Assembly: GCA_950097015.1 (NCBI GenBank)
Contig: CATNEN010000041.1
Span: forward strand, 3,224,001 to 3,288,000
From: Macrostomum hystrix
Taxonomy: Eukaryota; Animalia; Platyhelminthes
Direction of reading: 5' to 3'
DNA length: 64,000 nt
The position numbers and the translations under genes are program-made. Shown one piece after another: positions 25,521 to 58,349 of this stretch (position 1 is the stretch's first letter; each line of letters opens with the position of its first letter). The notes below the pieces were generated by a model. That model saw only the letters and a program-made list of their open reading frames with translations, had not been told where the DNA came from and did no database searches.

Positions 25521-26910
25521 CTCGTGCATTGCCTGTCAGTCAGCAGTCGTCCGCAAGCAGCTTTCTCCGTATTTGCTTAGCGAAGGTTGCAAGCCTATGT
25601 GGGCGCTGCAATTTCTTATTTAATGCAGTTTACTTGAAGCTGCTGTATTCATGTGCTCCCAGTCCGTCGAGGCACTGCGGGCCGCGCGCTGACAGCCAAG
25701 CAAACTTCGGGCGCCCTGGGACACAGGTTCGCGCCTCAGTGCACGCTGGCCACGGCTGGGTGATTTTGATGCGTTACTAAGCAAGCGGACGCTGACGGGT
25801 GCCCGGTCCGTCTGAGTTCCCTGTCTCTCCATTGGGAATCGAGTCCCTTCAGCAGATCAGTTTCTGCCTAAAACTTCAGCCCGGAATCCCCGATGCCGGA
25901 TGGAAGTACTCATGGCAGGGCAGGGCTAAACTATTTCAACTTACTGAAATATCTATGAGCTGCAATGACAGCACATCGCACGCAAATAAAAATGCTCGCG
26001 CTGAGTTTGCGCCACTGTCATCGGTGCTGTCGGATCTCTGCAGCCGCAATTTAATGCACGGAGCTGCTTCAAGAGGCAAAGTAGCCGCATTCCTTTACAA
26101 ACACCCTGCAAATGGGGATGCAGGATTATGCAGGATAGACATGCCCACTCCTGAGCTGTGCTCACATGAGTTCCCTTTCACAAACTTGAAGAACAAGAAG
26201 GACAGAGCCAATCATGACCCTTTTCCGATTTTGGTCAAGGACAGCGACGGAGATGGGTGGGTAAGCCAAATGTGTATTTATACTGGAGCGCAGTGCGTGA
26301 CCGACCGAAAGTAAAGCAGAAGGTACAACATTGAGTAATTGCTTCAGGAAAAAGAATAACATTTAGTGTCCAAAGTCTACTGTCCCTTGCTCTCAAATGG
26401 CTATTAGGAGGCCTAAAGTTAGCAGAAAATAGCGTGACTACACCACATACTATATACTCCTACAATAACTAACACACTGTAACAAAATTTTGCAGAAATT
26501 TACAAAAATCCAAAACAATAGCAGTCAGCTCATGCAGAAGGGGTTCAGGGCTTGATTTGAATGGCGCAGATTAGCATGGTAGTGCAACAGAAGGAAACTG
26601 CAGAGTGATAATTCGACTGCGTTTATGGGATTTCGAAAGGGAAGCGGGACGCCTCGACACACAGGTCATGCTACATGTCCCGCATTGCCCGAGTCAGTCC
26701 CAGAATGAACAGGTGCAAACAGCAGGTCTGGTGCAACGATTTGAAAAGATTCCAACGAGTCTGAATTGCCACCAGTTTGTGGGCTCAGCCGAGACGAAGT
26801 CAACAGTGGGAACTGCATCGATACACATCAAAGATCGTACAGAGCATTTCAGACTTGTGGAGAACTTGGGATCAACAACAGTAAAGCAAGTACTGTGAGC
26901 TCCTCGCTGG

Positions 26911-29833
26911 CTACTTGGCCTCGGCCTGAGGCGAGTCGATTTTGACCACCAACACGAGGTAGTAGAGCCAATAGAAGCAGTTGTACAGCAGGAAGCAGGC
27001 CGGGAACAGGAAGCGGCTGTACGCATCGATGTCCGAGTCCGGCGCCGGCACGGGAGATGGCGGACTGCCGCCCTTGGCGACACCGCCGCCGACGCCGCCC
27101 TCCTCAACACTGACGGCCAGGAGATCCTCGAGCTCCTCTGGGAAGCCGGGGTAGCCATGGCCGCCGCCGAGGTGGCCGCAGGGCAGGCCGGGCGGAGGTC
27201 CGCGGATTACGGCGAGGCGCTGCAGCTCGGAGCGGACCACATTGCGGATCTCCTGCTGCCAGCTCTCCATCTTGGTGCGCCTGGCGCGGAATGAGGCAAC
27301 CGCAAACTCGATCAGGGCACCGATGACAAACATGATGCTGGCGATGATCCAGATGTCGATGGCCTTGATGTAGGCCACTCTGTGGGAGTTGGAGGGATGG
27401 AATTCAGAACAGAGTTTTGAACAATATTGAAGACCATTGCAAATGCACTGGCAGCCGAACGAAAATCTTCACTGGCAAATGGCGAAGCGGGGCAGAAGCG
27501 CCAAAACCCCTGCGATTTCGTCTTAAACAGACTCCCCGTAGCTGCAGTTTCGCAGCTTAGCAACTCCCCCGGCCAGGAGTTGGGAACTGCAGACAGCGGA
27601 GAAGGGAGGCCGACGGAAAGTGGCGGGCACGGCGGGTTGGCCGGAGCTCCGCCGGCACAGCCTTACTCCTCCCCAGTAAGTCAGGGTCTGTTGGCAAAGG
27701 TCTCGGTGGCATGCTCAATACTCCGCAGCGGGCAGTCCACAATCCCAACTGTGGGATCTGCGCCCAGCCCAGCTGCGTGAGGGGTTGCGGGGCTGGCTGG
27801 GCTCGGCTCCAGTGGCGACGGGATTAGGATGGCCGGATTAGCGCAGGGCGCTGGCAGCCTCCATTAACCCGGGCCGCGAAATTCGCCAATTCGTGCCGTG
27901 GCCGAGGAAATTGGCAGTTTTAAAGAGCCTGTTAATCAGGCGGCCGATCGAGGCAACCAGCCCGCCCAGCGCTAATGAGATGGCCTGCCCGGCTCCCTGC
28001 TGCCGCCTGTGCCAGCTTTGATCTCGTCTTCCACGGCCCGCTGAACCTCTCCACTGAAGTGGCATTTTAGTAAAATAATTTATTTTTAGCACTCCATCTG
28101 CTGCTCTTTTACTTTAAAGTTTGCTTGGCCAGGTGGAAATCAGTACGACTCAATTCAGAGCCATGTGGAACAGGTAAATCTGTTTTTTTCAGAGTGAAGA
28201 ATGCCGAGCCACAACCACAACATGAGTAGTAGTGATGGTTCTCATATCCCAACTGCACAATTCGAAGGTTTAGAGTTAATTCATGCTCATAGTGCAGGTC
28301 CTTAGAAATAGATGAACTCCTCACTGTGGAAGCCTGGGTGCGTGAGCATCTGCATGCCCTACCTGGGAAGGTTGGCCATCACTGTGGAAGCCTGGGTGCG
28401 TGAGCATTTGCATGCCCTACCTGGGAAGGTTGGCCATCACGGTGGAGGCCTGGGTGTGTGAGCATCTGCATGCCCTACCTGGGAAGGTTGGCCATCACGG
28501 TGGAGGCCTGGGTGTGTGAGCATCTGCATGCCCTACCTGGGAAGGTTGGCCATCACGGTGGAGGCCTGGGTGTGTGAGCATCTGCATGCCCTACCTGGGA
28601 AGGTTGGCCATCACGGTAAAGGCCTGGGTGTGTGAGCATCTGCATGCCCTACCTGGGAAGGTTGGCCATCACGGTGGAGGCCTGGGTGTGTGAGCATCTG
28701 CATGTCCTACCTGGGAAGGTTGGCCATCACGGTGGAGGCCTGGGTGTGTGAGCATCTGCATGCCCTACCTGGGAAGGTTGGCCATCACGGTGGAGGCCTG
28801 GGTGTGTGAGCATCTGCATGCCCTACCTGGGAAGGTTGGCCATCACGGTGGAGGCCTGGGTGAGGATACCCAGCAGCGTGAGGAGGCCTAGAGTAACCCT
28901 GGCGGGCACAGCCTCGATATTGACCCAGAAGCTGAGCCAGCTGACAGCGATGATGAGGATGGCGGGAATGTAGGTGCCAGCCAGGTAGCTGCTGAGTTGT
29001 CGCTCCAGTTTGAAGATGGCCTTCAGGCAAGCGTAGCTGCCTGTGCTGGTGGCGCTGCCCTGAGTACAGTCCTCAACCGTGACGAACGCAGGCGTGTTGA
29101 ACTCGGAGATCTGCATGGAGTGGTCCAGCTCCACCGCTTCTTTAGAGCCGTCCCGCTTCCACTTAAACAACAGGTTTCTTGTTGTGTAGCCGTAGCTGCC
29201 AATGTTCACGAAGCAGGTCTGTGTGTCCATTGGGAACGTCTGCAGTTGCATCTGACAGGAGAACTTCATGGTCACTTTCTGAGAGTACAGGATCTGACCG
29301 TCCGGCTCAACCCTGATTAAGTAGTTTGGTTGCGTCATTGCGTGCAGATAGCCTTCCTTGCCGTTGCGAAAGAAGAGATCTGGGAGCCACAGGTGCTCTT
29401 TTTTTGCAGGAATCGCGATGGACTCGTTGTAGAAGCCGAAGTCTTTGTGCTGATCCCAGCGAAGCCGAGTGTCCTTCCAGAACTGGCGCAGGTACATGTC
29501 AAGTGTGAACTCCATGTTGATGACGTCCACCTTGTTGATGCTGAGGATCTTCATGTTCACGTCCACTTCTGTGGATGGCTGGACTGGCTTTCTGGAACCG
29601 GAGACGTCCTGGACAGGCGTCACTGGTCGTCCGTCCGCGTGTGGCGGCATCTCCACGGGTCTCTGGTGCTTGTTATAGCCTCGGAAAATTGCCTCTACGA
29701 TGCGGTCCACAATGTTGGTGTAATTCGGCCGCGTCACCGCATAACCCAGCGTGGTCGAGGCGTCTTCTGCCGCAGAGACCGCCGCGGCCGCAGCCGCGAG
29801 CAGAGCGTAGAGCAGCCGGCACCGCAAGCGCAT
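26911..29833 (-). CDS. Cys-loop ligand-gated anion channel subunit A (GluCl/glycine-receptor-like), 491 aa
   Basis: Exon 29833-28827 carries a signal peptide, the Cys-loop CQMQLQTFPMDTQTC, a loop-C Cys pair (DCTQGSATSTGSYACL), M1 and M2 with the anion-selective PAR motif. A phase-2 GTAGGG donor joins AG at 27381-27380. Exon 27379-26911 encodes M3 (VAYIKAIDIW...LIEFA) and M4 (DIDAYSRFLFPACFLLYNCFYW). Confidence 0.95.
28320..28860. repeat. 58-bp minisatellite spanning the channel-A exon end and 5' splice site, ~9 copies
   Basis: Minus-strand unit gcctccaccgtgatggccaaccttcccag|gtagggcatgcagatgctcacacacccag. Confidence 0.95.
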
Positions 29834-30529
29834 GGAGCCGCAGCCGCCACAATGGCTCCGCAGCCTGTCAGTCCGTTACTGTTCCGGAGTCGCGGAGCTC
29901 TCAGGAGAGGCAGGCAGGCTGAGCCGGGTCAGCAGTTGTCAGCGCTCTGTCAGGCCGCTCCGGGGCTAATGGCTATGTGCAACTTTTTCCTGAGCTGCGA
30001 TGCCTGCAGCAGTGAGCCGGGGGCGCTGCTGTTCTTATCTATCCATCTCCTATATCTGCATTTCTGGGGATCAGGCTCATCCAGAAACTCTTATCCCTGT
30101 CTCCGCACTCAGTCCCTCTTTCCCCTGCAGCGGGTCCCCGGGTCGCATCTGCACTGGCAGAGCCAATGGCCGGGGCTGGGACTCGGGGCTGAGTGCCCAC
30201 GGACCGGACAGCCCAACTGTTTTAATCCCCACCCTCTCAACCCGCAAAGCGCGTGCTGGTTTATCCCCGCTCCCCACCCGCATCGCATTGTCACCCACCG
30301 CCTGTCCGGTAGGAATTTCATCTCCTGTCCTGTCAGCCCAAAACAAAGGCCTCTGCCCCGCTCCATCCATTGCCACATTCTCTGAGAGCCGCCTGAGCGG
30401 GCCGGTTTTGTCCGGATTTGGCCTCTGTCATTGCCCTCCCATATTGCGCACAAGACGGTCTCAGTGCCAGAAGCGGATGCCAAGAGCTCTTTAGTGCGGG
30501 ACCCTGGCAACCCTGAAGCCTTGAATGCA

Positions 30530-31910
30530 TCTCACTGCTCCATTCATTGAATTCATATCTCACTGCACCAGTGAATTCCCATCTCACTGCACCAGTGCAT
30601 TCCCATCTCACTGCACCAGTGAATTCCCATCTCACTGCACCAGTGAATTCCCATCTCACTGCACTAGTTCATTCCCATCTCACTGCAACAGTGCATTCCC
30701 ATCTCACTGCACCAGTTCATTCCCATCTCACTGCTCCATTCATTGAATTCATATCTCACTGCACCAGTGAATTCCCATCTCACTGCACTAGTTCATTCCC
30801 ATCTCACTGCACCAGTGCATTCCCATCTCACTGCACCAGTTCATTCCCATCTCACTGCACTAGTTCATTCCCATCTCACTGCACCAGTTCATTCCCATCT
30901 CCCTGCACTAGTTCATTCCCATCTCACTGCACTAGTTCATTCCCATCTCACTGCACTAGTTCATTCCCATCTCACTGCACTAGTTCATTCCCATCTCACT
31001 GCACTAGTTCATTCCCATCTCACTGCACTAGTTCATTCCCATCTCACTGCACTAGTTCATTCCCATCTCACTGCACCAGTTCATTCCCATCTCCCTGCAC
31101 TAGTTCATTCCCATCTCACTGCACTAGTTCATTCCCATCTCACTGCACTAGTTCATTCCCATCTCACTGCACTAGTTCATTCCCATCTCACTGCACTAGT
31201 TCATTCCCATCTCACTGCACTAGTTCATTCCCATCTCACTGCACTAGTTCATTCCCATCTCACTGCACCAGTTCATTCCCATCTCACTGCACTAGTTCAT
31301 TCCCATCTCTCTGCACTAGTTCATTCCCATCTCACTGCACTAGTTCATTCCCATCTCACTGCACCAGTTCATTCCCATCTCACTGCACTAGTTCATTCCC
31401 ATCTCACTGCACCAGTGCATTCCCATCTCACTGCACCAGTGCATTCCCATCTCACTGCACTAGTTCATTCCCATCTCACTGCACCAGTGCATTCCCATCT
31501 CACTGTACCAGCCAGTGCATTCCCATCTCACTGCACCGGTGCATTCCCATCTCAATGTACCAGCCAGTGCATTCCCATCTCACTGTACCAGCCAGTACAT
31601 TCACATCTAACTGTACCAGCCAGTACATTCCCATCTAACTGTACCAGCCAGTGCATTCCCATCTAACTGTACCAGCCAGTGCATTCCCATCTAACTGTAC
31701 CAGCCAGTGCATTCCCATCTAACTGTACCAGCCAGTGCATTCCCATCTAACTGTACCAGCCAGTGCATTCCCATCTAACTGTACCAGCCAGTGCATTCCC
31801 ATCTAACTGTACCAGCCAGTGCATTCCCATCTAACTGTACCAGCCAGTGCATTCCCATCTCACTGTACCAGCCAGTGCATTCCCATCTAACTGTACCAGC
31901 CAGTGCATTC
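30530..31910. repeat. 24-bp minisatellite grading into a 28-bp derivative
   Basis: gcactagttcattcccatctcact to ~31500, then gtaccagccagtgcattcccatctaact. Confidence 0.95.
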
Positions 31911-31976
31911 GCGTATCACGGCTGCTTGTTCCGCAGGCAAAATAAATTTAGGCATTTTTTAGCAATGCTCAACCCC

Positions 31977-32263
31977 ATAATAATAATAATAATTGATTAC
32001 ACCTGTCCGATTGGGCCAGATGTGCAGCCGACAGCACAGCCACAGCTATTGCGCGGCACATCTGAAGGCTGCGTACGGCTGATCAGTCCATGGACACCCA
32101 CCTTCAATTATCCCAGCTGATGCTGGTACCCAATTAACAGCTTGGTGAACTGAAGCAATGCAGAGTTAAGTGTCTTGCTAAAGGACACAAATTGTTCACG
32201 TGGAGTCGGGAATCGAACCCCGAACTTTAAGTCGTGAGTCCGACGCTCTAACCACAAGGCTAC
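31977..32263 (-). mobile_element. tRNA-derived CORE-type SINE
   Basis: On the minus strand: A box TAGCCTTGTGG, B box GGTTCGATTCC, then gtgtcctttagcaagacacttaactctg...gcttcagttcaccaagctgttaattggg resembling the CORE domain (GTGACCTTGGGCAAGTCACTTAACCTCT...CCTCAGTTTCCTCATCTGTAAAATGGG), and a (TTA)n tail at ~31977-31995. Confidence 0.75.
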
Positions 32264-32939
32264 AACATCGTCAACTACAACACATCATCATCATCAACTA
32301 CTACAACATCAACCCCAACAACACTACTTAATATCAGTAGCGAAGACCGCACGCGCTGCCACTAGCAAAATTCTCACGAAAAGAATCCTGTTAGGTACTT
32401 CTTTTCCCGGACCGCTAAATCTAAGGGAAGTGAAAAGACTGGCAGTCACTCAGCTCCGCCTGTCACGGGACGGTCCTCATGCAGTGCTGAGTTCGCATGA
32501 ATGAGCGCAAAAGTTCCCCAGCGAGCACTGCAGCTCTGCGCTCACTGCCTGAGCGCCTGGCTGACATGCAGCCATCAAGCAAAAAGTACATTGGGCTGTC
32601 ACGGAGTCTGCAACCCATGCGACTGGATTTTTCTGGCCTCTTGAGCTTGATCTCAGATTCTGTGCTGAAGTACTGAGCTCTGAGGAATTGAGTCAGATGA
32701 AAATACATTACTCATTGTTAGTGCTAACCTTTCTCACCGCTGGTATAGCCGCGGTCCAGAGACTAATATTGAAATCCAATCCTGCACCGGCAACCAATAA
32801 ACTATATTTTCTCAAGGCCTGGAAGGCAGCCTAGAGGCAGGCCAGTTCACTGTCTGCACTTCCAAGCTGATGGTCAGCAAGTACTGTCTCACTGAGCAAG
32901 AAAGAACTGTATTCAAAGTCATGCCTGCCACCTGACTGG

Positions 32940-33270
32940 ACTTGATGACAGATCTGACACCCAGAACTCCATCAAGCAAGACTTGATGACAGATCTGACG
33001 CCCAGAACTCCATCAAGCAAGACTTGATGACAGATCTGACGCCCAGAACTCCATCAAGCAAGACTTGATGACAGATCTGACGCCCAGAACTCCATCAAGC
33101 AAGACTTGATGACAGATCTGACACCCAGAACTCCATCAAGCAAGACTTGATGACAGATCTGACGCCCAGAACTCTATCAAGCAACACTTGATGACAGATC
33201 TGACGCCCAGAACTCTATCAAGCAACACTTGATGACAGATCTGACGCCCAGAACTCTATCAAGCAACGAG
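32940..33270. repeat. 41-bp minisatellite, ~8 copies
   Basis: Unit gacttgatgacagatctgacgcccagaactccatcaagcaa. Confidence 0.95.
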
Positions 33271-33747
33271 AAAGCAAATGACCTTGAATAATAAAGTACT
33301 CGAAGAAATAATTGCTCTTTGAGAAGCCTCTTATTAGAATGAAAAGAGCCTGAGCTGCTCTGCTGAGCACTGGCCAGTGATGGCCGGCATCCCACCGCGA
33401 TCTCCAGCTCTTCAAAGCCCTCCGTTTCCGCACGGCTGCTCAGCCATGCTCAGTCCTTAGCTCAAAATTCCTGAGCACACCCAAGAGCACTTTGCCCCAT
33501 TCGCAATTCCCGGTCCAGAAATCCCAGTTTGCCAAGCGAGGCCATTCCTTCTTTTGTCTGAAATCTAGCCGGCTGAGCTGCGGCTGTTTGAACTGCAGTT
33601 ACTCCCGACTCGGGCTCTCTCCTAGCTGGACTCTGCAGACTCAGAGCTGCTTTGAATAAATTCTCAGAGTACAGTCTAAACTGCCGCACCACTCTGCTCT
33701 GTTTAACTTGCGTGACCCATCTGAGTAGCATGAACCGTTTGAGTTGC

Positions 33748-33925
33748 CATCTGGTCTGGTGGCAATCTGGTCTGGTGGCAATCTGGTCTGGTGGCAATCT
33801 GGTCTGGTGGCAATCTGGTCTGGTGGCAATCTGGTCTGGTGGCAATCTGGTCTGGTGGCAATCTGCTGTGGTGGCAATCTGGTCTCATGGCAATCTGGTC
33901 TGATGGCAGTCTGGTCTGGTGGCAA
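33748..33925. repeat. 16-bp minisatellite, ~11 copies
   Basis: Unit atctggtctggtggca. Confidence 0.95.
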
Positions 33926-34589
33926 GATGCTATTTTGCACAGAGATGCGAAACAGAGATGCGACAGCACAGGCAGTGAAGGAGCTAGGCTAGATTTGTGC
34001 TTGGTTTAGCTGGTGCTAAATTTACTTTTAAAGTACCAGCTTATTAATATTGTTTGACAAACTGAGGTCAAAGCCGACTTGCAGTGATAGCTTTTACAGT
34101 CCACAACAGTTTCGTGCAATAATTTTGAATTCTAGCCACAAATGTTAATATGACAGGGCTTTATTTCGCACTGCTGAGATGTGAACTCAAATGGTGAGAG
34201 GTAAGAAAAGCTGGCATTTGCGAGGCCAGGCCGCGGAGCTGTAGGCACCCAGTTACTGGAGAGCCGCAAGATGAGCTCTAGCGGCGCTGAGCCAGCCCTG
34301 AGCCCCCATCCCCCCGCGCCTGCACACGCTCCGTGCAGCATAAATAATAAATTATCAGGTGCCGAGACCTCTTCACCTGGGTGTATACACGCTGTGCCTG
34401 ACGGCTGAGCTCACTCAACAAATCCGGCAGTACTTGATGAAGCCAGGCCGGGGCTAATCTGCCAGCTTCTCGATTTTCGGCGTTTATAGGGCCGAAAATT
34501 TAAAGGCGCTGGGCTGTTAATCTGGGTGCGTGTTTGGCGCTTGGAGAACCTCCGAAAAAGGGAACCAAACCACAGTTCCAAGCTGTGGG

Positions 34590-35222
34590 GGAGGGAATGG
34601 ACAACACTGCAACCTGATGGGCAGGGAATGGACAATACTGCAACCTGATGGGCAGGGAATGGACAATACTGCAACCTGATGGGCAGGGAATGGACAACAC
34701 TGCAACCTGATGGGCAGGGAATGGACAACACTGCAACCTGATGGGCAGGGAATGGACAATACTGCAACCTGATGGGCAGGGAATGGACAATACTGCAACC
34801 TGATGGGCAGGGAATGGACAATACTGCAACCTGATGGGCAGGGAATGGACAACACTGCAACCTGATGGGCAGGGAATGGACAACACTGCAACCTGATTGG
34901 CAGGGAATGGACAATACTGCAACCTGATGGGCAGGGAATGGACAATACTGCAACCTGATGGGCAGGGAATGGACAACACTGCAACCTGATGGGCAGGGAA
35001 TGGACAACACTGCAACCTGATGGGCAGGGAATGGACAACACTGCAACCTGATGGGCAGGGAATGGACAATACTGCAACCTGATGGGCAGGGAATGGACAA
35101 TACTGCAACCTGATGGGCAGGGAATGGACAACACTGCAACCTGATGGGCAGGGAATGGACAACACTGCAACCTGATGGGCAGGGAATGGACAATACTGCA
35201 TCCTGATGAGCAGGGAATGGAC
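34590..35222. repeat. 31-bp minisatellite, ~20 copies
   Basis: Unit gggcagggaatggacaa(c/t)actgcaacctgat. Confidence 0.95.
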
Positions 35223-35319
35223 ACAATTTTTCAAGGTAAGTAGTCAAAACCAATTATCTTCGAATTTGGAAATTTGAAATGTGTCATCCTTGGACCATTA
35301 GCAGGAAGCCAGGGCTTAC

Positions 35320-36263
35320 CTTGGTAGGTTGTTGATGACGGACATGCCCTGGGTGAGGATGCCCAGCAGGGTGAGCAGGCCCAGGGAGACCCTGGCGGGC
35401 ACAGCCTCGATGCTGATCCAGAAATTGAGCCAGGACACGGCCACGATAAGGATGGCGGGGATATAGGTCCCTGACAGGTAGCTGCCCAGCTGCCGCTCCA
35501 GTTTGAAGATGGCCTTCAGACAAGCGTAGCTGCCTGTGCTGGTGGCGCTGCCCTGAGTACAGTCCAGACTCTGGGCGAACGCAGGCGTGTTGAACTCGGA
35601 GATCTGCATGGAGTGGTCCAGCTCTACTGGGTCCTTGGAGCCGTCCCGCTTCCACTTAAACAACAGGTTTCTTGTGGTGTAGCCGTAGCTGCCAATGTTC
35701 ACGAAGCAGGTCTGTGTGTCCATTGGGAACGTCTGCAGTTGCATCTGACAGGAGAACTTCATGGTCACTTTCTGAGAGTACAGGATCTGACCGTCCGGCT
35801 CAACCCTGATTAAGTAGTTTGGTTGCGTCATTTTATGCAGATAGCCTTCCTTGCCGTTGCGAAAGAAGAGATCTGGGAGCCACAGGTGCTCTTTTTTTGC
35901 AGGAATCGCGATGGACTCGTTGTAGAAGCTGAAGTCCTTGTGCTGATCCCAGCGCAGCCGAGTGTCCTTCCAGAACTGGCGCAGGTACATGTCAAGTGTG
36001 AACTCCATGTTGATGACGTCCACCTTGTTGATGCTGAGGATCTTCATGTTCACATCGACGGCCGTTGAGTCCTCTTCGATGGTGCCGTCTGGTTTCTGCC
36101 TGCTCGCTGGCACGGGGCGCTGGTGCTTGTTGTAGCCGCGGAAGATGTGGAACACGATGCGATCCACAATGTTCGTATAGTTGGGCGTGCCACCACAGTC
36201 GCCGCCCAGCGGGCAGGCCAGCAGAGCAGCCAGCAACGACAGAAGCAGCCGCGATGGCGCCAT
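35320..36263 (-). CDS. Cys-loop anion channel first exon B (signal peptide + ECD + M1-M2); no dedicated M3-M4 exon found
   Basis: Intact 944-nt reading frame paralogous to 29833-28827, ending at the same codon and phase (NLP-AG|GTAAGC). No KAIDIW/M3/M4 sequence was seen between 35319 and 29834. Confidence 0.9.
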
Positions 36264-39200
36264 TGTGGCGCCTCAAGCGGTCGTTAGCTTCTGCGGACGC
36301 AATCTCGGGGCCTGCCGCCCATGCGGCTTGGCTCGGCCTAGGGCCCTGCTGCTGCAACTGAGTATTAGGCTGAGTCGATGGGCTGCAGTGGCGCCGCTGG
36401 AAGTTGCAGCGGTACTTTGAGTCAGGCAAAACTCCGTTGCCAAGAATCACTGAACTCGACGATGTCGGACCTGCCGCGGCTGGGCACGCTGAAAGTATTA
36501 AGTGCCGAGCGAGCGATGAGTGAGCGGAGCGAGACTCGCGTACGGCTGGCTTGTGCAATGCGCTTCTGTTGGCAGTAGGGATTCTGGTTGAGATGCGGCA
36601 AGGAGGGGAGTACGGGCGGCCCGTGGGAGAATCCAAATGGGTGGGATGAGGCAGGCTGCGACTGCGGGCCTACTGCAGCTGCCATTGGCTGTCGGCCTGA
36701 GCCGTCAGTGGGCTGCTAGAGGTGAAGCAGTAGCCTCTCTGCCCTAAAACCGGCGCGATCCGGATCGGTCGGCATGGACGCCCCCCGCCCCACCTCGGCT
36801 CTGACCCTCCCGCGGGCCGGGGAAGAAAAGCGCCCCGCTGCCCATTGTTGTTGCCGTGATCGATTGCTCAGCGGGTCTCGGCCTACGAATTTAGGACCCT
36901 CGCATCGGCGGAGAATCTGGCTGCTAGCCCGCCACTGTTGGCTGTCAGGCTGCTCCGAGGGATTTCAGGAAGCTGAGGCGGCGAGGTCGGGTTGGCGAAC
37001 TCCTGTCCCTGGGTGACACAGGCAAGCTGGAAATGTTTTGAAAAAAGCAGCTGTGAAAGTTTAGCAGAATTCTTCGTCACTGGCCTACCTTGATGGGCCT
37101 GTCCGTCGGATGGGCACTGTTCTGGTTCTTGTTACCTCCCTACTAAGGTGGGTTCGGTCAGCGCAGCAGGAAGTGAAGGCCAGGGAAATATTTGGCAAGT
37201 CGCGGTTTCCACGCTGGGGCGAGTTGGAACGGAGAAAAAAGTCCCAACTCGAGGCGTTCGAAGACGAGGCAATTAGCGAGCTTCCGTCGACAAACTCCCA
37301 CGGAGAGGCAGCATGCGGGCAGTTCCGCAGCGGGCGCACGTCTCTTGCGAAGTCTGACGCCTCTGACAGGTCAGCGCAGGGTCAGCAGCTGCAGTTTTTC
37401 CTTAGATGCAGCAGCCGAACTTGCCCATTGCGAATCAGCTTCCGTTGCTGTCTGCCACGTGCACTTTTGCGTCTGCGCTAATGCATTTAGCCCAGATGGG
37501 GCGCTGGGGACGCGCCAGGCGATAAAGTCGAAATAATTGAATAATTATTGGCTGGCTGCACTGAACGCAAGCTCTTTGGCCCTCGGCTTTGAGCTCAGCT
37601 GCCTGGCACTGATTTCATTAGCGGCCAAAATGAACTCACGGGCCATGGCTCGCACTTTTAGTTTTATTGCTGGCAGTTACGACTTTCCAATAGCCAGAGT
37701 TCACAGAGCATTCGTGATCAGGCAGCTGTGGCTGACTGAACCACGCATTAAATATAATTTTATAATTGCTTATGAACTAGACAATGGCCTGCCGCCTGAA
37801 ACGATGCTGCATATTTACTTAGGGAGGCAATGACAATGCAGACGGTAATTCAGCCTTCAAGCAGTTTCAGGTTGCGCTGATAACAAATCATGGCGTGACT
37901 CGGCAATGCTCTTGCAGCCTCAGAGAGCATGGCGATAGAGAAGGGCGCAAGCGTTGCTCGCACTCTCGCTGCTCCCCACCGCCGTGTTTGCTCGGAGCGG
38001 AAGGGTGGAGCGGGCGGTCATCACAGTGAAATCCCCGCTGGCCGCCCGCGCCCGCCCGGTCTACTCCCGTACACACAGGCACCCAACTTTGGCTTTGAGG
38101 TGGGCTTATCTCGCGCACTTCTTTGCGTCTCCCTCAGAGCTTCACGGTGACACGCCGGCTCCTCTCTCCCTGGCCTGCCAGCCCCAGCCGCTGCGGGAGT
38201 TCATGCCGTGGGCCAGTGAGCGAACTCCACGGCACTCTCTGCCCCCCAGCTTTCATTTCTGTCAGTCTCCCAGTCTGCCGCAACCGCTCTCTCCAGGAGC
38301 AAAGATCGGTAAATTAGCTTAAGTCGCAGAGTGAGGGAGCGGCAGCTTCAAGAACTCTCGTCATTCAGAGCCGTAGGCAGGGGCTGCGTCAAATTTCTCC
38401 TCCCTCCAAACGAATTCATCAAAAGGAATCTTATATCCCGTCCGGCCACTCACGGCGAGTGAAAGTTCCGCTTCCCCGAAGGAATGAGGGGATGTTAAGC
38501 AGAACTTATTGCAGAGTCGAGTGGGCCTCCGGAGCTGGTTCCGCCCCTCCCCAGTCAGGATCGGGCGTGTTGGAACCGGTCGTAGCAGTCTCTCTGCGGC
38601 CTTTGTGAGGACGTAATTAGGCCGGCGGCGGCTCGTGCCCGGGCTGTGCGCCTATGAAAGCTTGCATCCGCATCCTCTGAGCGGCAGTCTGCGATGAAGT
38701 TAATCCCAATTTGCTTTGAGACTGCCGGACTTGCCCCGGGCAGAGTTGCCACTAATCTGTTCCCGATTTCAACTTAATCCGGCCCCCTCAACCCCCAGGG
38801 GATACGAGAGATTGGGTCGAACTGACGAGGAGGGGCAGTGAGGGAGCCCGGAAAGCTGACGGGATTTCGGGGCATCTTGCGGGCACTGGAGGAGTGAGTG
38901 CCGAGCTTGAGTTTGAAATCCTTCAGGCCGGAGGGCCGGTCCGGACGGAAATCACGGCTGGCACAGAGGAAAGGCGAAGAAGAGCAGCTCAGGCTGGGAA
39001 GACGCGAGGAATACGATGCGGAAGAGCGAACGAGTGCCAGAGTACGGGACAGTATTCGAGAGAATTTCATGTTCTGAGCGAAAGTGACAGCAGAATAGAC
39101 AGCATTTCATCCCAGTCAGCAGAAGCTAGATATCGAAATGAATTTCAGCTCCATGTACCGCAGGTTTCATAAGCTCTTATACAAGTGCACAATTACAAGC

Positions 39201-40084
39201 GAGCTGCAGAGGTGGGTGGCGGCCAATCGATGGAGCCGCTGCCATGTTTAAATTTGGCATCAGATCTGTCCTGAACAGCACGAATAAGATCCCGGAGCCT
39301 CAACCCGCACAATCGGATTAACCAATGTGCGCAGAGGCCGAGGACTCGTGCATAATCTTCTCCCCAGCTCTAGTTGGAACTCAGCGGCAGATTCTGCGGT
39401 TAGTAAGCTCATTCTGCCTGGCTATCCGCCCCCAATCTCTCGCCCTCTGGCAACCCGTGAGCGAGGGAGCGGGGCGTTGGGGACGGGCGCGTCACTTGGC
39501 ATTACGCGTGAAAACGGGAAATTGCTTCGCGAAACGGAAGCCCCAGCCAGCCCTTGCCAGTCACGGACCGCACGGAGGTGGCAAGCAAGCGGGGACCACA
39601 GGATGTGTGTGGTGCTCGAGAAGGCAGCAAGGTCTTAGCGACTTCACTCTGCTTAATGAGCTGCGGAGAACAGCAAGTGCATGCCTCTGTCCCATGTCGG
39701 AGCTCCGCTGAGAAGCTCTGTTAGTCTCGTGAGCGCAGGTAGCAGGACAAAATAATGATTGACAGATGCCTCCTTGGAGCAGAAATCAGTGGTGCACAGT
39801 TGTTGCTGATCGTTTGTTCGGCTGTTTTCCCAAGTCCTCCAGGCTTCAGGCAACAAGTGCTGGACATTCCCCTCTTTCATCCCGCACAACCCACATCCTC
39901 ATCCTTCCAGAAGCTTCAGCCATTTTCAATGCCCAGCCATAGTGGAGCTATTCTCCTGAAATCACTTCTGCCTTCCTGCTGGAGAACTCAGGGCTTTCCT
40001 TTCGCACAGCGGCATAGACCTGCTTCATGCGCTCGTGTCTCATTCAGTTATCACTTGCACTCCAGCACTGCCACCAGATTGGCC

Positions 40085-40830
40085 AGCATTCCATAGCCAT
40101 CGTGGCGGCGACCGATGCGTCTTCGCAGCAGGAAGCCGTCTTCAGCCGAGGGGAGCGCAGTCCGAAGCACCCAGTCCAAGAGAAGCACGAAGAGGAACGG
40201 CGCCAGCGTGTCGACTTGCAGCACTCCTGACGAGGTGGCAAACAGGTCGGACAGGCCGTCCGCCGTAACAACAGCAGCGCGCGTGTCACGATACAGCAAC
40301 ATGACAGCGGCGACTAGCTGCTCTGGGACCCGGTAGGCTCGAAGGACGAGTGGGAGCGCGGCTCTCGACACCGAGTCAAACGCCTTGCGGAAGTCGACAA
40401 ACACGACGATCAGCGTTGACTCAGCTGGCAGGGCAATGTCCATCAACAGTGCGAAACTGGCTGGCAGCGGGGGCGAAGGCGCGTTCACAATGCCGTCGAA
40501 GAAGTCGCGCAATTCATTCCTGCGCTCCTCCGGAGTGTCGCCGGTCAGATTTAGCGCCACACGCCTCTTGCGCCCCGTCAGGGTCCGAACGGCCGTCCAC
40601 ACTGCGCGGCTCCTCACTTCTGGGCCAGCTGCTGTGATGGACTGGATGGGGTCGTCGACTGCGGCCTGCTGCCGCGTGTCCAGAAGACGTGCGAGCGAGT
40701 CCTCGGCGTCACCAGTGGGCCGTAGGGATCTTCGGAGTCACTCGATCTTCAACCACGCCTATCTGATCGTCGGATCGCTCTGCCAGACTGGCTGCGATCG
40801 CTCCGCCGGTCGCATCAGCGGGACCGTCTT
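40085..40830 (-). mobile_element. Degenerate non-LTR retrotransposon RT fragment (RTE-like), internally deleted
   Basis: VVFVDFRKAFDSV...LYRDT...GVLQVDTLAPFLFVLLLDWVLR (RT motifs; canonical GVLQGD is mutated); truncated before YADD. Confidence 0.85.
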
Positions 40831-42287: not shown

Positions 42288-43127
42288 ATGCTGACCGCAG
42301 CAATTATGCGCAGGGTTTGGACCCAGCAGCGGCCGCTTACGACTTTGCTCCGCCATCTGGCTGGAGGTTCAGCAGCAGTAGCTGCCGAGTTAAACTGGCA
42401 GGCCAGGGTGGACTTGGCCGCGGCCTACAGAGCGCTGGCCCAGCTGGGCTACAATGAAGGCATCTGCAACCACCTTAGCCTCATGACGCCTGCGGCTGAC
42501 GGCTCTGGTGCGGAGCTGATGCTGTTGGTGCCCTATGGTCTGCATTGGTCCCGCGTTCGAGCTTCCGACCTAGTTGGCCTCGACTCTCAAGGACGCATCT
42601 TTGAGGGTGACGGCCGTGCGGAGACTTCAGCGGCGACAATCCACCGGCCGCTGCACCTGGCTAGACCAGAGGCGAAGGCGGTATTCCACTTGCACAGTCC
42701 ATACACCACAGCGCTGAGCTGTCTGCGGGACCCTCGTCTGCGGATGGTGCATCAGAACTGCCTCTATTTCCTTACGAATTTGGCCTACGACATGGAATAC
42801 AGAGGCATCTCCGTGCACGACTCGGAGGGCGCTCGTTTGGCTGCCTGCCTGGCACCTGACAAGACATGCTTGATGATGGCCAACCACGGCTTCCTTGTGC
42901 TTGCAAGCACAGCAGCCATGGCCTTCCACTACGCCTACTACATAGAGCGTTGCGCAATGTATCAGCTGTTGGCCATGCAGTCGGGTCGCGAGCTCAAGGA
43001 GTTGGACCCAGCGCTAGCTGCGGCGGCGCACAAGGACATGGTGGAGTTTGTAGAGAAGGACGGTGAAATCTTCTTCAGGGCTGTGCAGCGCAAGATGAGG
43101 GAGGAGGGATCTGATTTTGATAAGTAA
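42288..43127 (+). CDS. Class II aldolase/adducin-head family protein, single exon, possible mitochondrial presequence
   Basis: RVDLAAAYR...NEGICNHLS...RVRASDLV...IHRPLH...VFHLHSPYTTALS...MANHG; metal-ligand HxH and NHG retained; Arg-rich, acid-free N-terminus. Confidence 0.9.
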   Translation: MLTAAIMRRVWTQQRPLTTLLRHLAGGSAAVAAELNWQARVDLAAAYRALAQLGYNEGICNHLSLMTPAADGSGAELMLLVPYGLHWSRVRASDLVGLDSQGRIFEGDGRAETSAATIHRPLHLARPEAKAVFHLHSPYTTALSCLRDPRLRMVHQNCLYFLTNLAYDMEYRGISVHDSEGARLAACLAPDKTCLMMANHGFLVLASTAAMAFHYAYYIERCAMYQLLAMQSGRELKELDPALAAAAHKDMVEFVEKDGEIFFRAVQRKMREEGSDFDK

Positions 43128-44978: not shown

Positions 44979-46936
44979 TCACTTGCCAGCCAGCGCTTCT
45001 TTCAGCTCGCCGGCCTGCTGCATCTCGCGTAGAATGTCCAGGCCGCCCAACAGCTGACCTTTCACGTACAGCTGCGGGTAGGTGGGCCAGTTCGAGTGCC
45101 GCTTGAGCGCCTCACGCACTCTTTGGTCCTGCAGGATGTCAAAGTGACCGAACTGCACGCCCTCTGAGCGCAGCAGCTCCACTATCTGCCTGCTGAAGCC
45201 GCAGCGGGGCGCATCCGGCGAGCCCTTCATGAACAGCATCACCGGCGACGCATTTACCAGCGACTCCAGGTGGGTGGTCACTGCGGCCTTAAGCGCTGGC
45301 CCGAGCTCGCCAGCCTCCTCCATCTCGCGCACAATGTCCAGGCCGCCGAGAAGCTGGCCGCCGGCGTACAACTGCGGGTAGGTGGGCCAGTTGCTTAGTT
45401 TCTTCAGGCCCTCGCGCACCGCCTGGTCAGTGAGGATGTCAAAGTGGTCCAGGGGTGCCTCGTCGGCGTGCTTGTGCAGCAGCTCCACGATCTGCCGGCT
45501 GAAGCCGCAGCGGGGCGCATCCGGCGAGCCCTTCATGAACAGCATCAGCGGCGAGCGGGCCAGGAGCGATCTCAGCCGAGCCTCCAGCTGCGCCTCAGTC
45601 TCCTTGTTTGCAACCGCTGACGCATTGCTACCTGAAGAGCCAGAGGTGGAGGCGGCAACTGCGGCGGAGAGCTTGGCGGCCAGTGCGGCTGGGTCGGCGC
45701 CGTTCAGCCGGTCCACCACCTGCGGCTGCTGCTGATCCGACGTGGCTCGGCGCAGCAGCAGGAAAGTCGGCACCGCCAGCACACCATATCGGCTCGTCAC
45801 CTGTGGCACCTGCGGAGTCGATTCAGTGACGAGACTGGCTCCTGTGTCAGCTAAAAAAACTCTTGTGTAGCACCCAATGTCGGGTGTGGCACCCAATTCA
45901 CACAATGTCGGGTGTGGCACACAATTCACCCAATGTCGGGTGTGGCACCCAATTCACCCAATGTCGGGTGTGGCACCCAATTCACCCAATGTCGGGTGTG
46001 GCACCCAATTCACTCAATGTCTGGTGTGGCACCCAATTCACCCAATGTCGGGTGTGGCACCCAATTCACCCAATATCTGGTGTGGCACCCAATTCACCCA
46101 ATGTCTGGTGTGGCACCCAATTCACCCAATGTCGGGTGTGGCACCCAATTCACCCAATATCTGGTGTGGCACCCAATTCACCCAATGTCTGGTGTGGCAC
46201 CCAATTCACCCAATGTCGGGTGTGGCACCCAATTCACCCAATGTCGGGTGTGGCACCCAATTCACCCAATGTCGGGTGTGGCACCCAATTCACTCAATGT
46301 CTGGTGTGGCACCCAATTCACCCAATGTCTGGTGTGGCACCCAATTCACCTAATGTCTGGTGTGGCACCCAATTCACCCAATGTCTGGTGTGGCACCCAA
46401 TTCACCCAATATCTGGTGTGGCACCCAATTCACCCAATGTCTGGTGTGGCACCCAATTCACCCAATGTCTGGTGTGACACCCAATTCACCCAATGTCTGG
46501 TGTGGCACCCAATGTCTGGTGTGGCACCCTATTCACCCAATGTCTGGTGTGGCACCCAATTCACCCAATGTCTGGTGTGGCACCCAATTCACCCAATGTC
46601 TGGTGTGGCACCCAATTCACCCAATGTCTGGTGTGGCACCCAATGTCTGGTGTGGCACCCAATTCACCCAATGTCTGTTGTGGCACACAATTCACCTAAT
46701 TTTCTGCTCGCCAGTCAGCGGTGGCTTACCTGCTCAGCCTCCACATTAACAAAGGTAACAGTGGAGTAGGCAGGCTCCTTGGCCAGCTCGTCCATGACCA
46801 CGGACATCTGCACGCACTGAGCTGCCCAGTCGGCCCTGAAGTGTAGCAAGCAGAGGCCGCCGGGGCTGGCAGAGGCCACCGCAGAATTGAAGGAGTCGGC
46901 CGAGCTGGCCAACAGCACTCGTGCGCCGCTTGTCAT
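44979..46936 (-). CDS. GLRX3: Glutaredoxin-3 / PICOT (Trx-like domain + two monothiol Grx domains), 345 aa
   Basis: Exon 46936-46730 ([10 protein letters not shown]; phase-0 GTAAGC donor) plus exon 45809-44979 with two [19 protein letters not shown]...NWPTYPQLY...GGLDI domains. Confidence 0.95.
45866..46700. repeat. 28-bp intronic minisatellite, ~29 copies
   Basis: Unit gcacccaattcacccaatgtc(g/t)ggtgtg inside the GLRX3 intron. Confidence 0.95.
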
Positions 46937-53250: not shown

Positions 53251-53416
53251 CGCTAGGATGGGACCCAGCTTGTCAATGAGCAGAGAGCTGAAATCCTGGC
53301 CTGATGATGAGGCTGTGAGAGCTCCGCAGCATACTTTTCATTTAGTGGAATACTGTACGCCTGAGCATGTTGTCAATTTATTACCTGCCTATCCTAGCCA
53401 GTATGTACATTGATAC

Positions 53417-54495
53417 TGTTCAATTAATATATGTACGTGGATGCCAACGTGCTGTTAAAATAATATAAATGACCCGCGCTGCAAGCGAGTGTGAGCGCGT
53501 ACCTTTCCGACAATTAAACTGCTGACTGATTCTCTCGATTCTCTCAATGGCGACGAGGCCATGTGGTCAGATTCCTGAGCTCTCAAACGACTCAGACTTA
53601 GAAATCTACGTGGAAAGAATGGAGCAATACTTCATACGCAACAAGATCGAGACTTCCGAAGCCAAGCGTGCTACTTTTCTCATGGCTATCGGCGAGAAAT
53701 ACTACAAGCTGCTTCGAGATCTGTGCCAACCAAAAAAATTGACGGACCTATCCTACGAGGTGCTGCAAGAAACTCTCCAGAACCACTGCTCTCCAGCACC
53801 GTCAGAGCTCGTGGCACGTTTCAAGTTTCAACGCCGACTCCAGCACGAGGAAGAGTCCTTTGCTGACTTCCTAGCAGGGCTCAAGTCCGCATCAGCCCAC
53901 TGCAAATTCGGCGCGTGTTTGGAAGAGCGACTCCGAGATCAGTTTCTATTCGGCATGCAGAGCGACACCCTCCGTCCGCGCCAAGCTCTTGGAGAGCTCC
54001 GACCATTCGTACAGCGGAATGATCAAGCTGGCCACTGACCTCGAGTCGGCTCTCAAATACTCCAGCGAGATGGCGCGCCCTCCTGCCACCAACAGAGTCG
54101 CAAATTCGGGTTCGACTGGACCAGCTTGGAGACAACGCGTCGACAAGCAGAAGGTCTCGCTTGGAGCTACATCATCCACTGCGGGCAGCTGTGATAGCTG
54201 CGGCGGCATTCATCCACGCCAGACCTGCAAGTTTCGCAACGCGAAATGCCATCGCTGTGGCAGAGTCGGTCATCTCAAAAAGGTCTGTCGGTCTCCAGAG
54301 TCCGTGAAGCTGCTCGACGAAGCCGAGGCTTCCGAAACGGATAACGAAATTAAGCTGATTCACCACCTCTCAACTGCTTCGAAATCTCCGATCCTGGTGC
54401 CACTGCAGGTGGAGAAAGTGCCGACTCACTTCGAACTCGACACTGGCTCAGCCGTCAGTTTGGTTCCGAAAGCGTTCTACGAGGCACACCTTTGG
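53417..54495 (+). mobile_element. Gypsy/Ty3 LTR-retrotransposon 5' remnant (LTR end, PBS, gag, zinc knuckles, protease start)
   Basis: TATA-like (53461), ATTAAA (53513) and CA end (53546). PBS TGGCGACGAGG at 53548-53558 complements the 3' end of tRNA-Ser(GCU). Gag reads YVERMEQYF...ARFKFQRRLQ...LEERLRDQFLFG, with a frameshift near 53990. Then CHRCGRVGHLKKVC knuckle and protease ELDTGSAVSLV. No RT or integrase. The LTR 5' boundary is approximate. Confidence 0.9.
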
Positions 54496-55447: not shown

Positions 55448-58349
55448 TCAGTTGCCTGCGAGAAAGGGATGTCGCAGGAGGGTCTCCATGCTGGGGCGCG
55501 CGCCAGGATCCTTTGTCACGCACTTGGAGTAGAAGTCATGCAGGTTCCTGGAGCATCGGCCTAATGGGAGTTGCGGCATCGGCATGGAGACGATGGCTTT
55601 GATCATCTGACCCTGTGGCAGGCGGCAGTTTGGGGGCAGGATGTGCGCCATCTCATACACGGTGCAGCCGAAGGCCCACACATCGGACTTGGCCGAGTAG
55701 ATCACCCGGTCGGCGCTACTGTCTAACAGCTCTGGTGCCATAAAGCAAAGCGTTCCGCACTGGCTGGTGCTCGAATAAGCCACTGTGGTGGAGATGATCT
55801 CCTTCGCCAGGCCGAAGTCAATCAGCTTAACGGAGCCCTCGTTGGACAACATCACGTTCGAGCACTTTATATCTCTGTGTAGCACGGCATTCGGCTTTCG
55901 GGTGTGCAAGAAGTTCAGAGCTTCGCAGATCTGAGGAATGACAAGCAATGAGAGTCGTTGGAATAATATTCGCGCATCTTAAAAAGGGTTTTACATTGGG
56001 ACGATGAAATCCCAAAGAAAATATAGCAGCACAGGAAATAATTGAACCATACCTGACGAGAAAATTTACGGATACCAGACTCATCAAATGGCTGCCTTTG
56101 ACGTTTCATCAGATCATGGAGGCTAACTCCTGAAATTAGCTCAGTGAAGATACAAAAGTCCCCGTTGGCCTGCTGCTCGCACTTTAAAAAGACCAAGATG
56201 TTAGGATGCTTGATGCCGCTAAGGATCTCGATCCCTTTCTTCTCCTGGGAGATGATCCGAGTGACCTGGTCGTTCATCATGCCCCGCAGCTTCACGATCT
56301 TTACGGCCACAAACTGATGTTTGTCCGTGATGGCTTTGTACACCATGCCAAACCCGCCCTCGCCGATAGGCTTCTTACTGCCGTCCTCCTCGCACATGAT
56401 GTTCCACTTTTTAAAATTAGGATCCAGGCCACTTCCGACGGCGCTGCAAAGCGTATAGAGAAACCTTTTTGCATCCGTGTTCAAAACAATCAGGGTTTCA
56501 CAACTCAACAAGACCAATATATTTTTTGCGATAACCAACGATAGACTTACGAGGGCATCTCAGTGGTTTCTTTCTGGCGCTGGGGCCCGCGGCTCTGTCG
56601 ATAGAAGCCGGACTCGGCCAGTTTCTCCCGGGCGCCCGGTTCCTTCCTAGTCTGCATCAGGACTGTCAGCATGGCCGCCTGATCCGCTTTCTTGGCCAGC
56701 GCCTCAGCATTTTCACCTTTCTGGTTTTGCTTTCTGACGCTGCAGCCGCAGCGAACAAGGAAGCTGACCACTTCTGTGCTCGAGCCTTCCATGACTGCTA
56801 CCATCAGTGGGGTATTGCCGTTGGCGTCTGGAGCGTCCATTGGAGCGCCAGCATCCTTCAGGAATTCCACCAGATCGAGATTGCCACTCTTTGCGGCGAA
56901 CCAGACGAGAGTTCTGCCACGATTGTTCTTGGCCGACATCTTGCAACCGAGTCGATGAAGCAGCTCAACCATCTCCTGGTTGCCCTGCTGCGCAGCACAA
57001 AGAATTGGTGTGTCACCATCGTTATCAGCGATATCCATGTCAGCACCCTCGTCAGCTAGAGCTGTCACGACATCAGTGAGGCCGTTGTATGCGGCTCGCA
57101 GCGCCGGACTGATGCCACGCTTGTTCCTATGGTTTTTGTTACTGCCCTCCTTTAGCAGGTACTTCACGACCTCATCGGGACCCACCTGGCAAGCGCCTAG
57201 CATAGCTGTCTCACCGTTCCTTGCATTGACGCGTGTCAGTGAAACGCCCATTTTTTTCAACTCCTTAAGCATCTCCAGGTTTGATGAGTCCGCTGCACTC
57301 ATTGCTAGGTCGTAACCTTTGGAGTTCACATGTTTCGGATCAGCACCAGCTTCCACGAGGATCTTGAAGATTTCCACCGAGCCTTGCTTCACTGAGCACT
57401 CCAACGGTGTTCTACCATCTTCGTCCTCATGGTCCACGTGCGCTCCGCTCCGAATCAGCGCGCGCACGATGTCTTCGTGACCGTTGTTCACAGCCGAGAA
57501 AATTGGTGTTCTACCAGAGTTATTCTCGTGGTTCACGTTGCAGCGCTTTTCAAGCATGAACTGCACCACCTCGAAGTGGTCGTTCTGAGCTGCACAGAAA
57601 AGAGGAGTGTTTCCTCGGTCGTCAGCCAGTTCAAAGTCTGCCTTTTTTGCTGCCAGCAATTCGATGATGTCCAAGTGCCCGTTTAGTGCCGCGATAAAGG
57701 CCATGGTTCGCTTCTGGCCAAGCTGCCGGTCAAAGGCCTTGCGATCCGGACTATTCTGCAGCCAAAACTCTATAACGCGAGTGTTTCCTTCCTGAGAGGC
57801 GCTCATCAGAGTCTTATCGTGAATCTCAGCATCGTAGTGTAGGCAGTGCGAGACGCCCTCGAGTGCAAACACCATCGTCAGATTGCGCTTTGTCAGTGCA
57901 ACATCAGACGCTGAAAGGCCTTTTTTGTTAAGATGCCTCACGTTGGCTCCCTTCTCAATGAGCAGGTCAGCGGCTTCATCTTGTCGATTCAAGGCGGCCA
58001 GAATGAGCGGCGTGTCTCCGTCATCGTCGGTGGCCTCAATGTCGGCCCCAAGTTTCAGCAGCTCTTGCATCATATCCAGTTTTCCCTCATGCGCAGCGAC
58101 GTGAAGCGCCGTCACGCCTTTGCTGCCTCGCACATTTGGATCGCCACCCTTGCGCACAAAGGACTGACACTGCTGTCTATTGCCTTCAGCTGCTGCTTCC
58201 AAGAATATTTTCACGTTGGAAGGCATGCTATCGATGCTCTGGAGGTCGTCAGGTGATGCGCCGAACAGAGCGCCCAGCTGCATCAGCGCTTGAAACAAGA
58301 GCTCTCGCTGCTGCGTATCCATACAGGCTGAAGTTGAATACATGTTCAA
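55448..58349 (-). CDS. Ankyrin-repeat protein with a C-terminal Ser/Thr kinase (STE11/MAP3K-like), ~890 aa
   Basis: Exons 58349-56551 (about 15 ankyrin repeats, e.g. TALHVAAHEGKLDMMQELLKLGADIEATDDDGDTPLILAA), 56443-56053 and 55930-55448, with GTAAGT/GTATGG donors and matching phases. Kinase motifs GEGGFG, VAVK, HRDIKCSN, DFG, APE and SDVWAFGCTVYEM are all intact. Confidence 0.92.

Follow-up and report, generated by a model that had tools for sequence, protein, structure and literature searches.

Subunit diversity in the Cys-loop receptors, i.e., the pentameric ion channels that are gated by ligands (pLGICs), is usually attributed to separate genes or to short cassette exons. At some loci, such as unc-49 and avr-14 (gbr-2) of Caenorhabditis elegans and GluCl alpha3A/B of Haemonchus, several subunits are produced by alternative splicing, and in those of the unc-49/avr-14 type the subunits combine one and the same N-terminal part with different C-terminal channel parts. 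The RDL, GluCl and nAChR genes of insects carry short mutually exclusive internal cassette exons that provide alternative ligand-binding loops. Another arrangement is found in the protocadherin clusters and UGT1A, in which several paralogous first exons lie in tandem. Each of them has a start codon and the extracellular or recognition part, and each is spliced to one or more shared C-terminal exons. There every first exon has its own promoter, and the choice among them is stochastic or tissue-specific. In both systems gene conversion homogenises part of the variable exons and other parts stay distinct (PMC1885805, PMC7811963). Here we describe a locus of the flatworm Macrostomum hystrix, located on the minus strand of a 64,000-nucleotide stretch of contig CATNEN010000041.1 (the window, whose positions are used for all coordinates). 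It is very probably one complex gene of the glutamate-gated chloride channel (GluCl) type, in which a distal first exon, B, and a proximal one, A, exclude each other and are each joined to a single exon C, yielding two subunits.

Like the protocadherin and UGT1A genes, this locus has tandem paralogous first exons with their own start codons that are spliced to a common C-terminal exon, and a partial homogenisation by gene conversion has also affected exons A and B. However, it has only two variable exons and one constant exon, codes for a pentameric channel and is split between the membrane helices M2 and M3, and promoters of its own for each first exon are here a probable rather than an established feature. 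With the unc-49/avr-14 type it shares the fact that one gene gives several Cys-loop subunits with one protein half in common, but its polarity is the opposite: here it is the N-terminal half that varies and the C-terminal half that is held in common, and the choice is of a first exon, not of a set of 3' exons. Insect RDL, GluCl and nAChR genes also provide alternative versions of ligand-binding parts from one pLGIC gene. Their cassettes are short and internal, whereas the unit in Macrostomum is a complete first exon of 0.95-1.0 kb, which runs from the signal peptide through all of the extracellular domain to two helices of the pore domain.

Two First Exons and One Last Exon

The gene consists of three coding blocks on the minus strand. 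An earlier interpretation of this DNA, made by a model from the letters (the sequence-only reading), had proposed a Cys-loop channel locus with two variable first exons and one shared exon for M3-M4, and all the coordinates that it gave for the three exons hold. The features of the gene are as follows.

35320 to 36263, minus strand: variable first exon B, with ATG, signal peptide, ligand-binding domain (LBD), M1 and M2 (intact open reading frame (ORF), Pfam matches, RNA-like junction contigs, dN/dS 0.036 against M. lignano)
28827 to 29833, minus strand: variable first exon A, with ATG, signal peptide, LBD with a longer N-terminal loop, M1 and M2 (intact ORF, Pfam matches, contigs, dN/dS 0.057)
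26911 to 27379, minus strand: shared constant exon C, with M3, intracellular loop, M4 and stop codon (sole M3-M4 match in the window, Pfam Neur_chan_memb positions 52-114, dN/dS 0.053 against M. lignano)
26500 to 26910, minus strand: 3' untranslated region (3'UTR), minimum extent (contigs of 1136-1362 nucleotides cover 26500-27381 with 0 mismatches and continue for ~250 nucleotides past 26500)
27380 to 35319, minus strand: intron of the B isoform, holding exon A and its upstream region (junction contigs; exon A is the only channel-like coding sequence inside)
27380 to 28826, minus strand: intron of the A isoform (contig depth near zero, GT..AG joint)

Exons A and B are found on the same strand, 5.5 kb apart, with 84% amino acid identity. 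Each of them opens with an ATG and a hydrophobic, signal-like N-terminus and is uninterrupted from there on, over 314 codons plus 2 nucleotides in B (36263-35320) and 335 codons plus 2 nucleotides in A (29833-28827). Both end in phase 2, B with ...CTACCAAG/gtaagc and A with ...CTTCCCAG/gtaggg, and the donor context CC(A/C)AG/gta, two nucleotides into a codon, is common to them. The ORFs and the Pfam matches thus confirm that there are two intact exons of ~1 kb with signal peptide, LBD and M1-M2 and with the same phase-2 AG/GT end. Exon C follows a pyrimidine-rich acceptor (...ctcccacag/A) at 27379, codes for a Gly/Pro-rich intracellular loop and closes with a TAG stop at 26911. When it is joined to either first exon, AG plus A forms an Arg codon and the reading continues as LPR-VAYIKAIDIW. 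The joined ORFs have 491 amino acids (A-C) and 470 amino acids (B-C), the latter in agreement with the proposal that B spliced to 27379 gives a full-length subunit.

Exons A and B have a phase-2 donor and no acceptor, so that each would be joinable only to the downstream exon C. As exon A lacks an acceptor, a transcript initiated at B could productively pair the B donor only with the acceptor of C, skipping A. The two subunits would then have M3, the intracellular domain and M4 in common.

A key point is that exon C has no second version. Neither the joined proteins nor exon C alone detected by tblastn (E<=10) a second M3-M4 anywhere in the window. We also built a profile hidden Markov model (HMM) from the M3-M4 tails of 69 flatworm relatives and ran it with --max on all six-frame fragments of at least 15 amino acids of the window; exon C was matched with E 8e-42, and the next best value was E 3.4. 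A hidden private M3-M4 exon for B within the window is ruled out by both searches, which matched exon C alone, and the single M3-M4 exon of the sequence-only reading stands, including over the interval 29834-35319 between B and A, where tblastn gave no second M3-M4. Exon C is the only possible partner of B within the window and in the loci of M. lignano that we examined. No further variable exons were found upstream of B, neither in the window nor in these M. lignano loci; genes for an Aldolase_II and a glutaredoxin-domain protein bound the locus in both genomes. A weak plus-strand tblastn match at 53394-53821 corresponds to an ORF (53547-54038) with no Pfam match and was taken as noise.

Channel Family

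Exons B and A match the Pfam domain Neur_chan_LBD with E 6e-46 and E 3e-45, respectively. Positions 1-49 of Neur_chan_memb (M1 and M2) are found in both of them and positions 52-114 in exon C, and the M4 region matches positions 117-151 of the flatworm tail HMM. Both first exons contain the Cys-x13-Cys signature loop CQMQLQTFPMDTQTC, the second (loop-C) disulphide DCTQGSATSTGSYAC and the anion-type PAR motif AVPARV(S/T)LG at the cytoplasmic end of M2. In loop A there is an arginine (PDLFFRNGK), aligned with a proline of C. elegans GluCl alpha (PDTFFPNEK, 3RHW), and the loop D Arg (YLRQFW) and the T..Y of loop C are also present. Of the solved structures, those nearest to it are 3RHW, the GluCl alpha of C. 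elegans (E 4e-54), and glycine receptors, with GlyR alpha among the best. Among proteins, the nearest are P0001 (94%, B-like) and P0003 (A-like) of M. lignano, followed by flatworm glutamate-gated chloride channels, with isoform 2 of Schistosoma mansoni SmGluCl-2 as the best named match (55% identity). According to Lynagh et al. (PMC4338433), the Schistosoma-type (“S-like”) GluCl clade is recognised by an arginine in loop A, where ecdysozoan GluCls have Ser/Pro/Gln, and it also has the amino-acid-agonist motif. Channels of this clade respond to L-glutamate and are insensitive to ivermectin. Judged by these residues, the gene belongs to the S-like clade, and its subunits are predicted to be anion-selective and gated by glutamate. 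The loop A Arg, loop D Arg, loop-C Thr/Tyr, double Cys-loop and PAR motif are shared with SmGluCl-2 and -3 (PMC4338433), which represent the nearest family with a characterised function. However, each of these two is encoded in one exon (PMC3757052), and in Macrostomum the 5' exon is duplicated and an intron interrupts the gene at the M2-M3 linker. It is this intron that makes a variable-exon architecture possible.

Both Junctions in Transcript Contigs

Evidence that both first exons are joined to exon C comes from assembled sequencing runs. When runs were searched with exon B, 99% of its words were present in four of them, all from the same organism. Contigs were aligned to the stretch 26500-30300 (exon C, intron and exon A) at 80% likeness, in such a way that contigs derived from B appear on exon A as B-specific letters. 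In three runs (X5, X6 and X7) coverage was limited to the exons and the 3'UTR, and the intron was essentially empty. One contig of X7 (record 21, 1362 nucleotides) contains 882 letters of exon C and 3'UTR with 0 mismatches. These are followed by 26 letters (reverse complement GCATGTCCGTCATCAACAACCTACCA) that, with the AG absorbed on the C side, are the exact end of exon B, and then by 203 letters that align to A with 29 differences, exons A and B differing at exactly 29 positions there. The 38 other letters listed at positions where A and B differ are all those of B. The B-C joint was also found in X6, and in X5 as a loose end of 48 letters, and in all three runs the principal way out of exon C leads through B-C contigs. 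The last B-specific base is 3 nucleotides from the junction, so 31-mers spanning it need real B-C reads, indicating that the junction is not an assembly artefact. The junction from 35320 to 27379 that the sequence-only reading had predicted is therefore present in exon-only contigs of three runs, with B apparently transcribed.

The A-C joint was found in X5 and X6 with GT..AG ends, and exact-match contigs cover exon A at 28833-29057 and 29531-29991. This joint is placed at 28421, in the eighth copy of a repeated exon end that belongs to the following array.

28321 to 28862, minus strand: minisatellite of 58 bp x 9.3, which copies the last 34 nucleotides of exon A and the splice donor (Tandem Repeats Finder, 97% matches)

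The array contains nine intact copies of the GT donor (at 28827, 28769 ... 28363), and read-through of the first one leads to an immediate TAG (LPR*). No RNA contigs were found inside it apart from the ambiguously placed 28-letter side of the junction. In M. lignano, the exon end is repeated once, in degenerate form and with its donor destroyed, just after the counterpart of exon A (~L001:23025-23057, L001 being the stretch of contig NIVC01001215 described below), followed by a different minisatellite. As to a joining of the variable exons to each other, among the joints listed in 26500-30300, which represent contigs only and a stretch that does not reach exon B, there is no joint ending upstream of exon A.

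A paralogous locus is expressed in the same three runs, with C-like contigs of ~88% identity (records 8, 14 and 22). In its contigs the ends of two further variable exons (...GCATGTCAGTGATCAACAACCTGCC+CAG and ...GAAATTTGCC+CAG) are joined to a C-type exon, of which the opening 21 letters are conserved. In addition, a sediment metatranscriptome from 2020 (run X1) contains 45% of the sampled exon B words, with contigs of 151 nucleotides that carry B-specific letters. This worm, or a very close relative, is thus detectable in environmental RNA.

Conservation in Macrostomum lignano

The same layout is found in M. lignano, on contig NIVC01001215 of the assembly GCA_002269645.1, where counterparts of the three exons follow each other as B' - 11 kb - A' - 1.8 kb - C'. 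The ORFs of B' and A' are intact up to the LPR donor, the AG/GT phase is that of the window and there is one C' (L001 24824-25304). Upstream, the Aldolase_II gene and the glutaredoxin-domain gene are neighbours in both genomes. The equal B-A-C order and the equal flanking genes in an independent assembly indicate that the loci are orthologous, and a misassembly of the window, in particular between 29.9 and 35.3 kb, is very unlikely. The three exons differ between the two genomes (Nei-Gojobori) by the following synonymous (dS) and non-synonymous (dN) rates.

Exon B: dS 0.95, dN 0.034, dN/dS 0.036
Exon A: dS 1.09, dN 0.062, dN/dS 0.057
Exon C: dS 0.45, dN 0.024, dN/dS 0.053

A dN/dS of 0.036 over a dS of 0.95 indicates that B is a constrained protein-coding exon and not a decaying duplicate, as a pseudogene would be. 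Two first exons are thus alternatively joined to one last exon, and both are conserved and constrained. Of the variable-first-exon logic drawn by the sequence-only reading from protocadherins and UGT1A, the joining of both exons to C has been borne out, in a minimal version with two variable exons, and its part on one promoter per exon is a probable extension.

In the public gene models of M. lignano, P0001 (L001 10001-16514) has B' fused to unrelated downstream sequence (RTWSNLSKKPKQ...), P0003 (L001 22006-22804) is A' cut off at 261 amino acids and P0002 is a third paralogue.

Gene Conversion and Fixed Differences Between A and B

The comparison of the two genomes also shows that exons A and B have not evolved independently along their whole length. 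Two tracts of gene conversion were detected from site patterns, identity and dS.

29140 to 29548, minus strand: gene-conversion tract in exon A, central ligand-binding core (alignment codons 96-232, patchier on to ~29026)
35633 to 36041, minus strand: gene-conversion tract in exon B, same core

Within the tract, A has 96-100% nucleotide identity to B, third positions included, versus 77-92% to its M. lignano counterpart. The sites that group A with A' and B with B' (by isoform), or A with B (within the genome), change along the exon in the same sense.

Codons 1-95: 36 by isoform, 4 within the genome
Codons 96-232: 1 by isoform, 53 within the genome
Codons 233-275: 3 by isoform, 12 within the genome
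Codons 276-336: 20 by isoform, 2 within the genome

The dS of the core is 0.08 within the genome versus 1.9 between genomes, which indicates that the core was homogenised by gene conversion in each of the two lineages separately. Two islands have nevertheless stayed isoform-specific in both genomes: codon 165, which is Lys in B but Ala or Thr in A, and codons 251-254, immediately ahead of loop C. Apart from this patch the subunits also differ in their N-terminal region. When the genomes are compared over M1-M2, A shows 19 synonymous changes and B 17, and neither shows an amino acid change, and 12 differences between A and B are fixed across both genomes. Among these are the ones at the M1 end and in the loop from M1 to M2 (SFWVN versus NFWIS), at the 2' pore position (Thr in A, Ser in B) and in the upper part of M2 and the linker to M3 (ASTVMAN versus GMSVINN). 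The sequence-only reading had proposed different pore linings over one cytoplasmic domain, and the 12 fixed differences in M1-M2 and the one exon C agree with it. The fixation of these differences, with no amino acid change between genomes, argues that exons A and B may encode two functionally distinct gating and pore modules. The two subunits would have different gating or pore properties and equal cytoplasmic interactions, and might act in different cells or as heteromers.

Candidate Promoters

Upstream of both first exons there are conserved non-coding sequences.

30048 to 30074, minus strand: conserved block upstream of exon A, with TATA-like GATATAGG at 30056-30049, candidate A promoter (conserved in M. 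lignano at equal distance from the ATG)
36311 to 36871, minus strand: candidate promoter and 5'UTR of B, made up of conserved non-coding blocks that precede exon B, among them GCCAATGGCAG at 36689-36679 (collinear with the M. lignano region upstream of B')

The RNA contigs of the A side end at ~29991 and depth is 0 above 30056, the TATA-like block being located 60-80 nucleotides upstream of the end of coverage. From these conserved blocks and the end of RNA coverage we infer a separate promoter for each first exon, so that each would be transcribed from its own start as in the protocadherin and UGT1A clusters. The upstream regions of A and B were compared for a common promoter motif and gave only short matches at chance level.

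Alternative Explanations

Several points weigh against a single gene whose two first exons have their own promoters and a common last exon. The library type of X5-X7, which belong to a single study, is unrecorded and was taken as RNA from the exon-only coverage, and the contigs carry no strand, transcript ends or reliable abundance. The A-C joint has a short side of 28 letters with equally fitting copies in the 58-bp array. The public M. lignano models P0001 and P0003 join neither exon to C', and a word search of the protein database with exon B found no full-length B-C or A-C protein of Macrostomum; it gave only the mis-modelled M. lignano P0001, P0002, P0003 and P0047 and more distant flatworm GluCls. 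Macrostomum uses spliced-leader (SL) trans-splicing, and a single promoter upstream of B might serve the locus, the A mRNA being made by trans-splicing at an acceptor upstream of A; the choice would then be a processing decision. Any transcript initiated at B necessarily includes exon A, and A contigs stopping near 29991 are equally expected after trans-splicing. However, the TATA-like GATATAGG block conserved between species is found 60-80 nucleotides upstream of the end of A coverage, and among the loose ends listed there are none at the 5' side of A. We consider a single promoter with trans-splicing unlikely.

Two other explanations question the B-C product itself, and to both of them we give very little credit. 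Exon B could be a partial tandem duplicate with no function of its own, the B-C mRNA being a tolerated by-product. It has no private 3' exon, and the public annotation of M. lignano models no B-C product, as would suit such a remnant, but B is intact in two genomes at a dS of ~0.95 with dN/dS 0.036, its M1-M2 has 0 amino acid changes despite 17 synonymous ones, exon C is left mainly by way of B-C contigs in three runs, and residues specific to A or B persist inside and beside the gene-conversion tracts. Such a history is most improbable. The B-C contigs could also stem from another copy of the locus, i.e., a haplotype without exon A or an unassembled duplicate, or the window could be misassembled at 29.9-35.3 kb. 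Short-read contigs cannot prove the DNA molecule of origin, and a paralogous locus with C-like sequence of ~88% identity is expressed. Against a foreign origin, the contig is identical to C and its 3'UTR over 882 nucleotides and to B over 231 nucleotides, the two sides of the junction coincide precisely with a GT donor and an AG acceptor, and in another species, assembled independently, B, A and a single C follow each other in the same order; this origin is hardly credible either. One GluCl-type gene in which B and A are alternatively joined to C thus remains much the best explanation.

Meaning of the Arrangement

We found no description in the open-access full-text literature of a pLGIC with alternative first exons that encode the LBD and M1-M2, nor anything relevant on variable first exons or alternative promoters in pLGICs, which is not proof of novelty. 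It is conceivable, at somewhat less than even chances, that this is the first pLGIC gene of the protocadherin/UGT1A type. In it, a module of LBD and M1-M2 would be swapped by the choice of first exon over a constant M3, intracellular domain and M4, selection-bounded gene conversion would keep a common binding core along with fixed isoform-specific gating and pore residues, and the architecture would be old (two Macrostomum genomes, dS ~1). If this is true, different neurons or muscles could express channels with different kinetics or conductance and identical cytoplasmic anchoring. A natural swap of the whole extracellular domain and M1-M2 would imply that modules can be joined in vivo at the M2/M3 boundary, a point that bears on the design of chimeras and on receptor evolution. 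The locus would also be a compact natural experiment, where an otherwise homogenised background is broken by the 12 fixed differences of M1-M2 and by a patch of four residues ahead of loop C, which may point at residues that tune gating or conductance. The flatworm-specific GluCl clade has been discussed as an anthelmintic target, and Macrostomum is a tractable free-living model. As the public M. lignano models miss the shared exon, subunit inventories of flatworms may be undercounted or mis-modelled.

Other Features of the Window

The interval between exons B and A (29834-35319, 5.5 kb) consists to ~45% of minisatellite, in four arrays.

30557 to 31899: minisatellite of 24 bp x 54, with very strong GC skew
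32939 to 33266: minisatellite of 41 bp x 8
33749 to 33925: minisatellite of 16 bp x 11
34588 to 35223: minisatellite of 31 bp x 20

The repeats attributed to this interval by the sequence-only reading are accordingly there. The short interspersed element (SINE) that it also placed in the interval was not confirmed, ARAGORN finding no tRNA-like element. The neighbours of the channel gene in the window are the following.

40051 to 40617, minus strand: reverse-transcriptase fragment
42288 to 43127, plus strand: Aldolase_II gene, syntenic with M. lignano
44979 to 45929, minus strand: glutaredoxin-domain gene, syntenic with M. lignano
56547 to 58349, minus strand: ankyrin-repeat ORF of 600 amino acids

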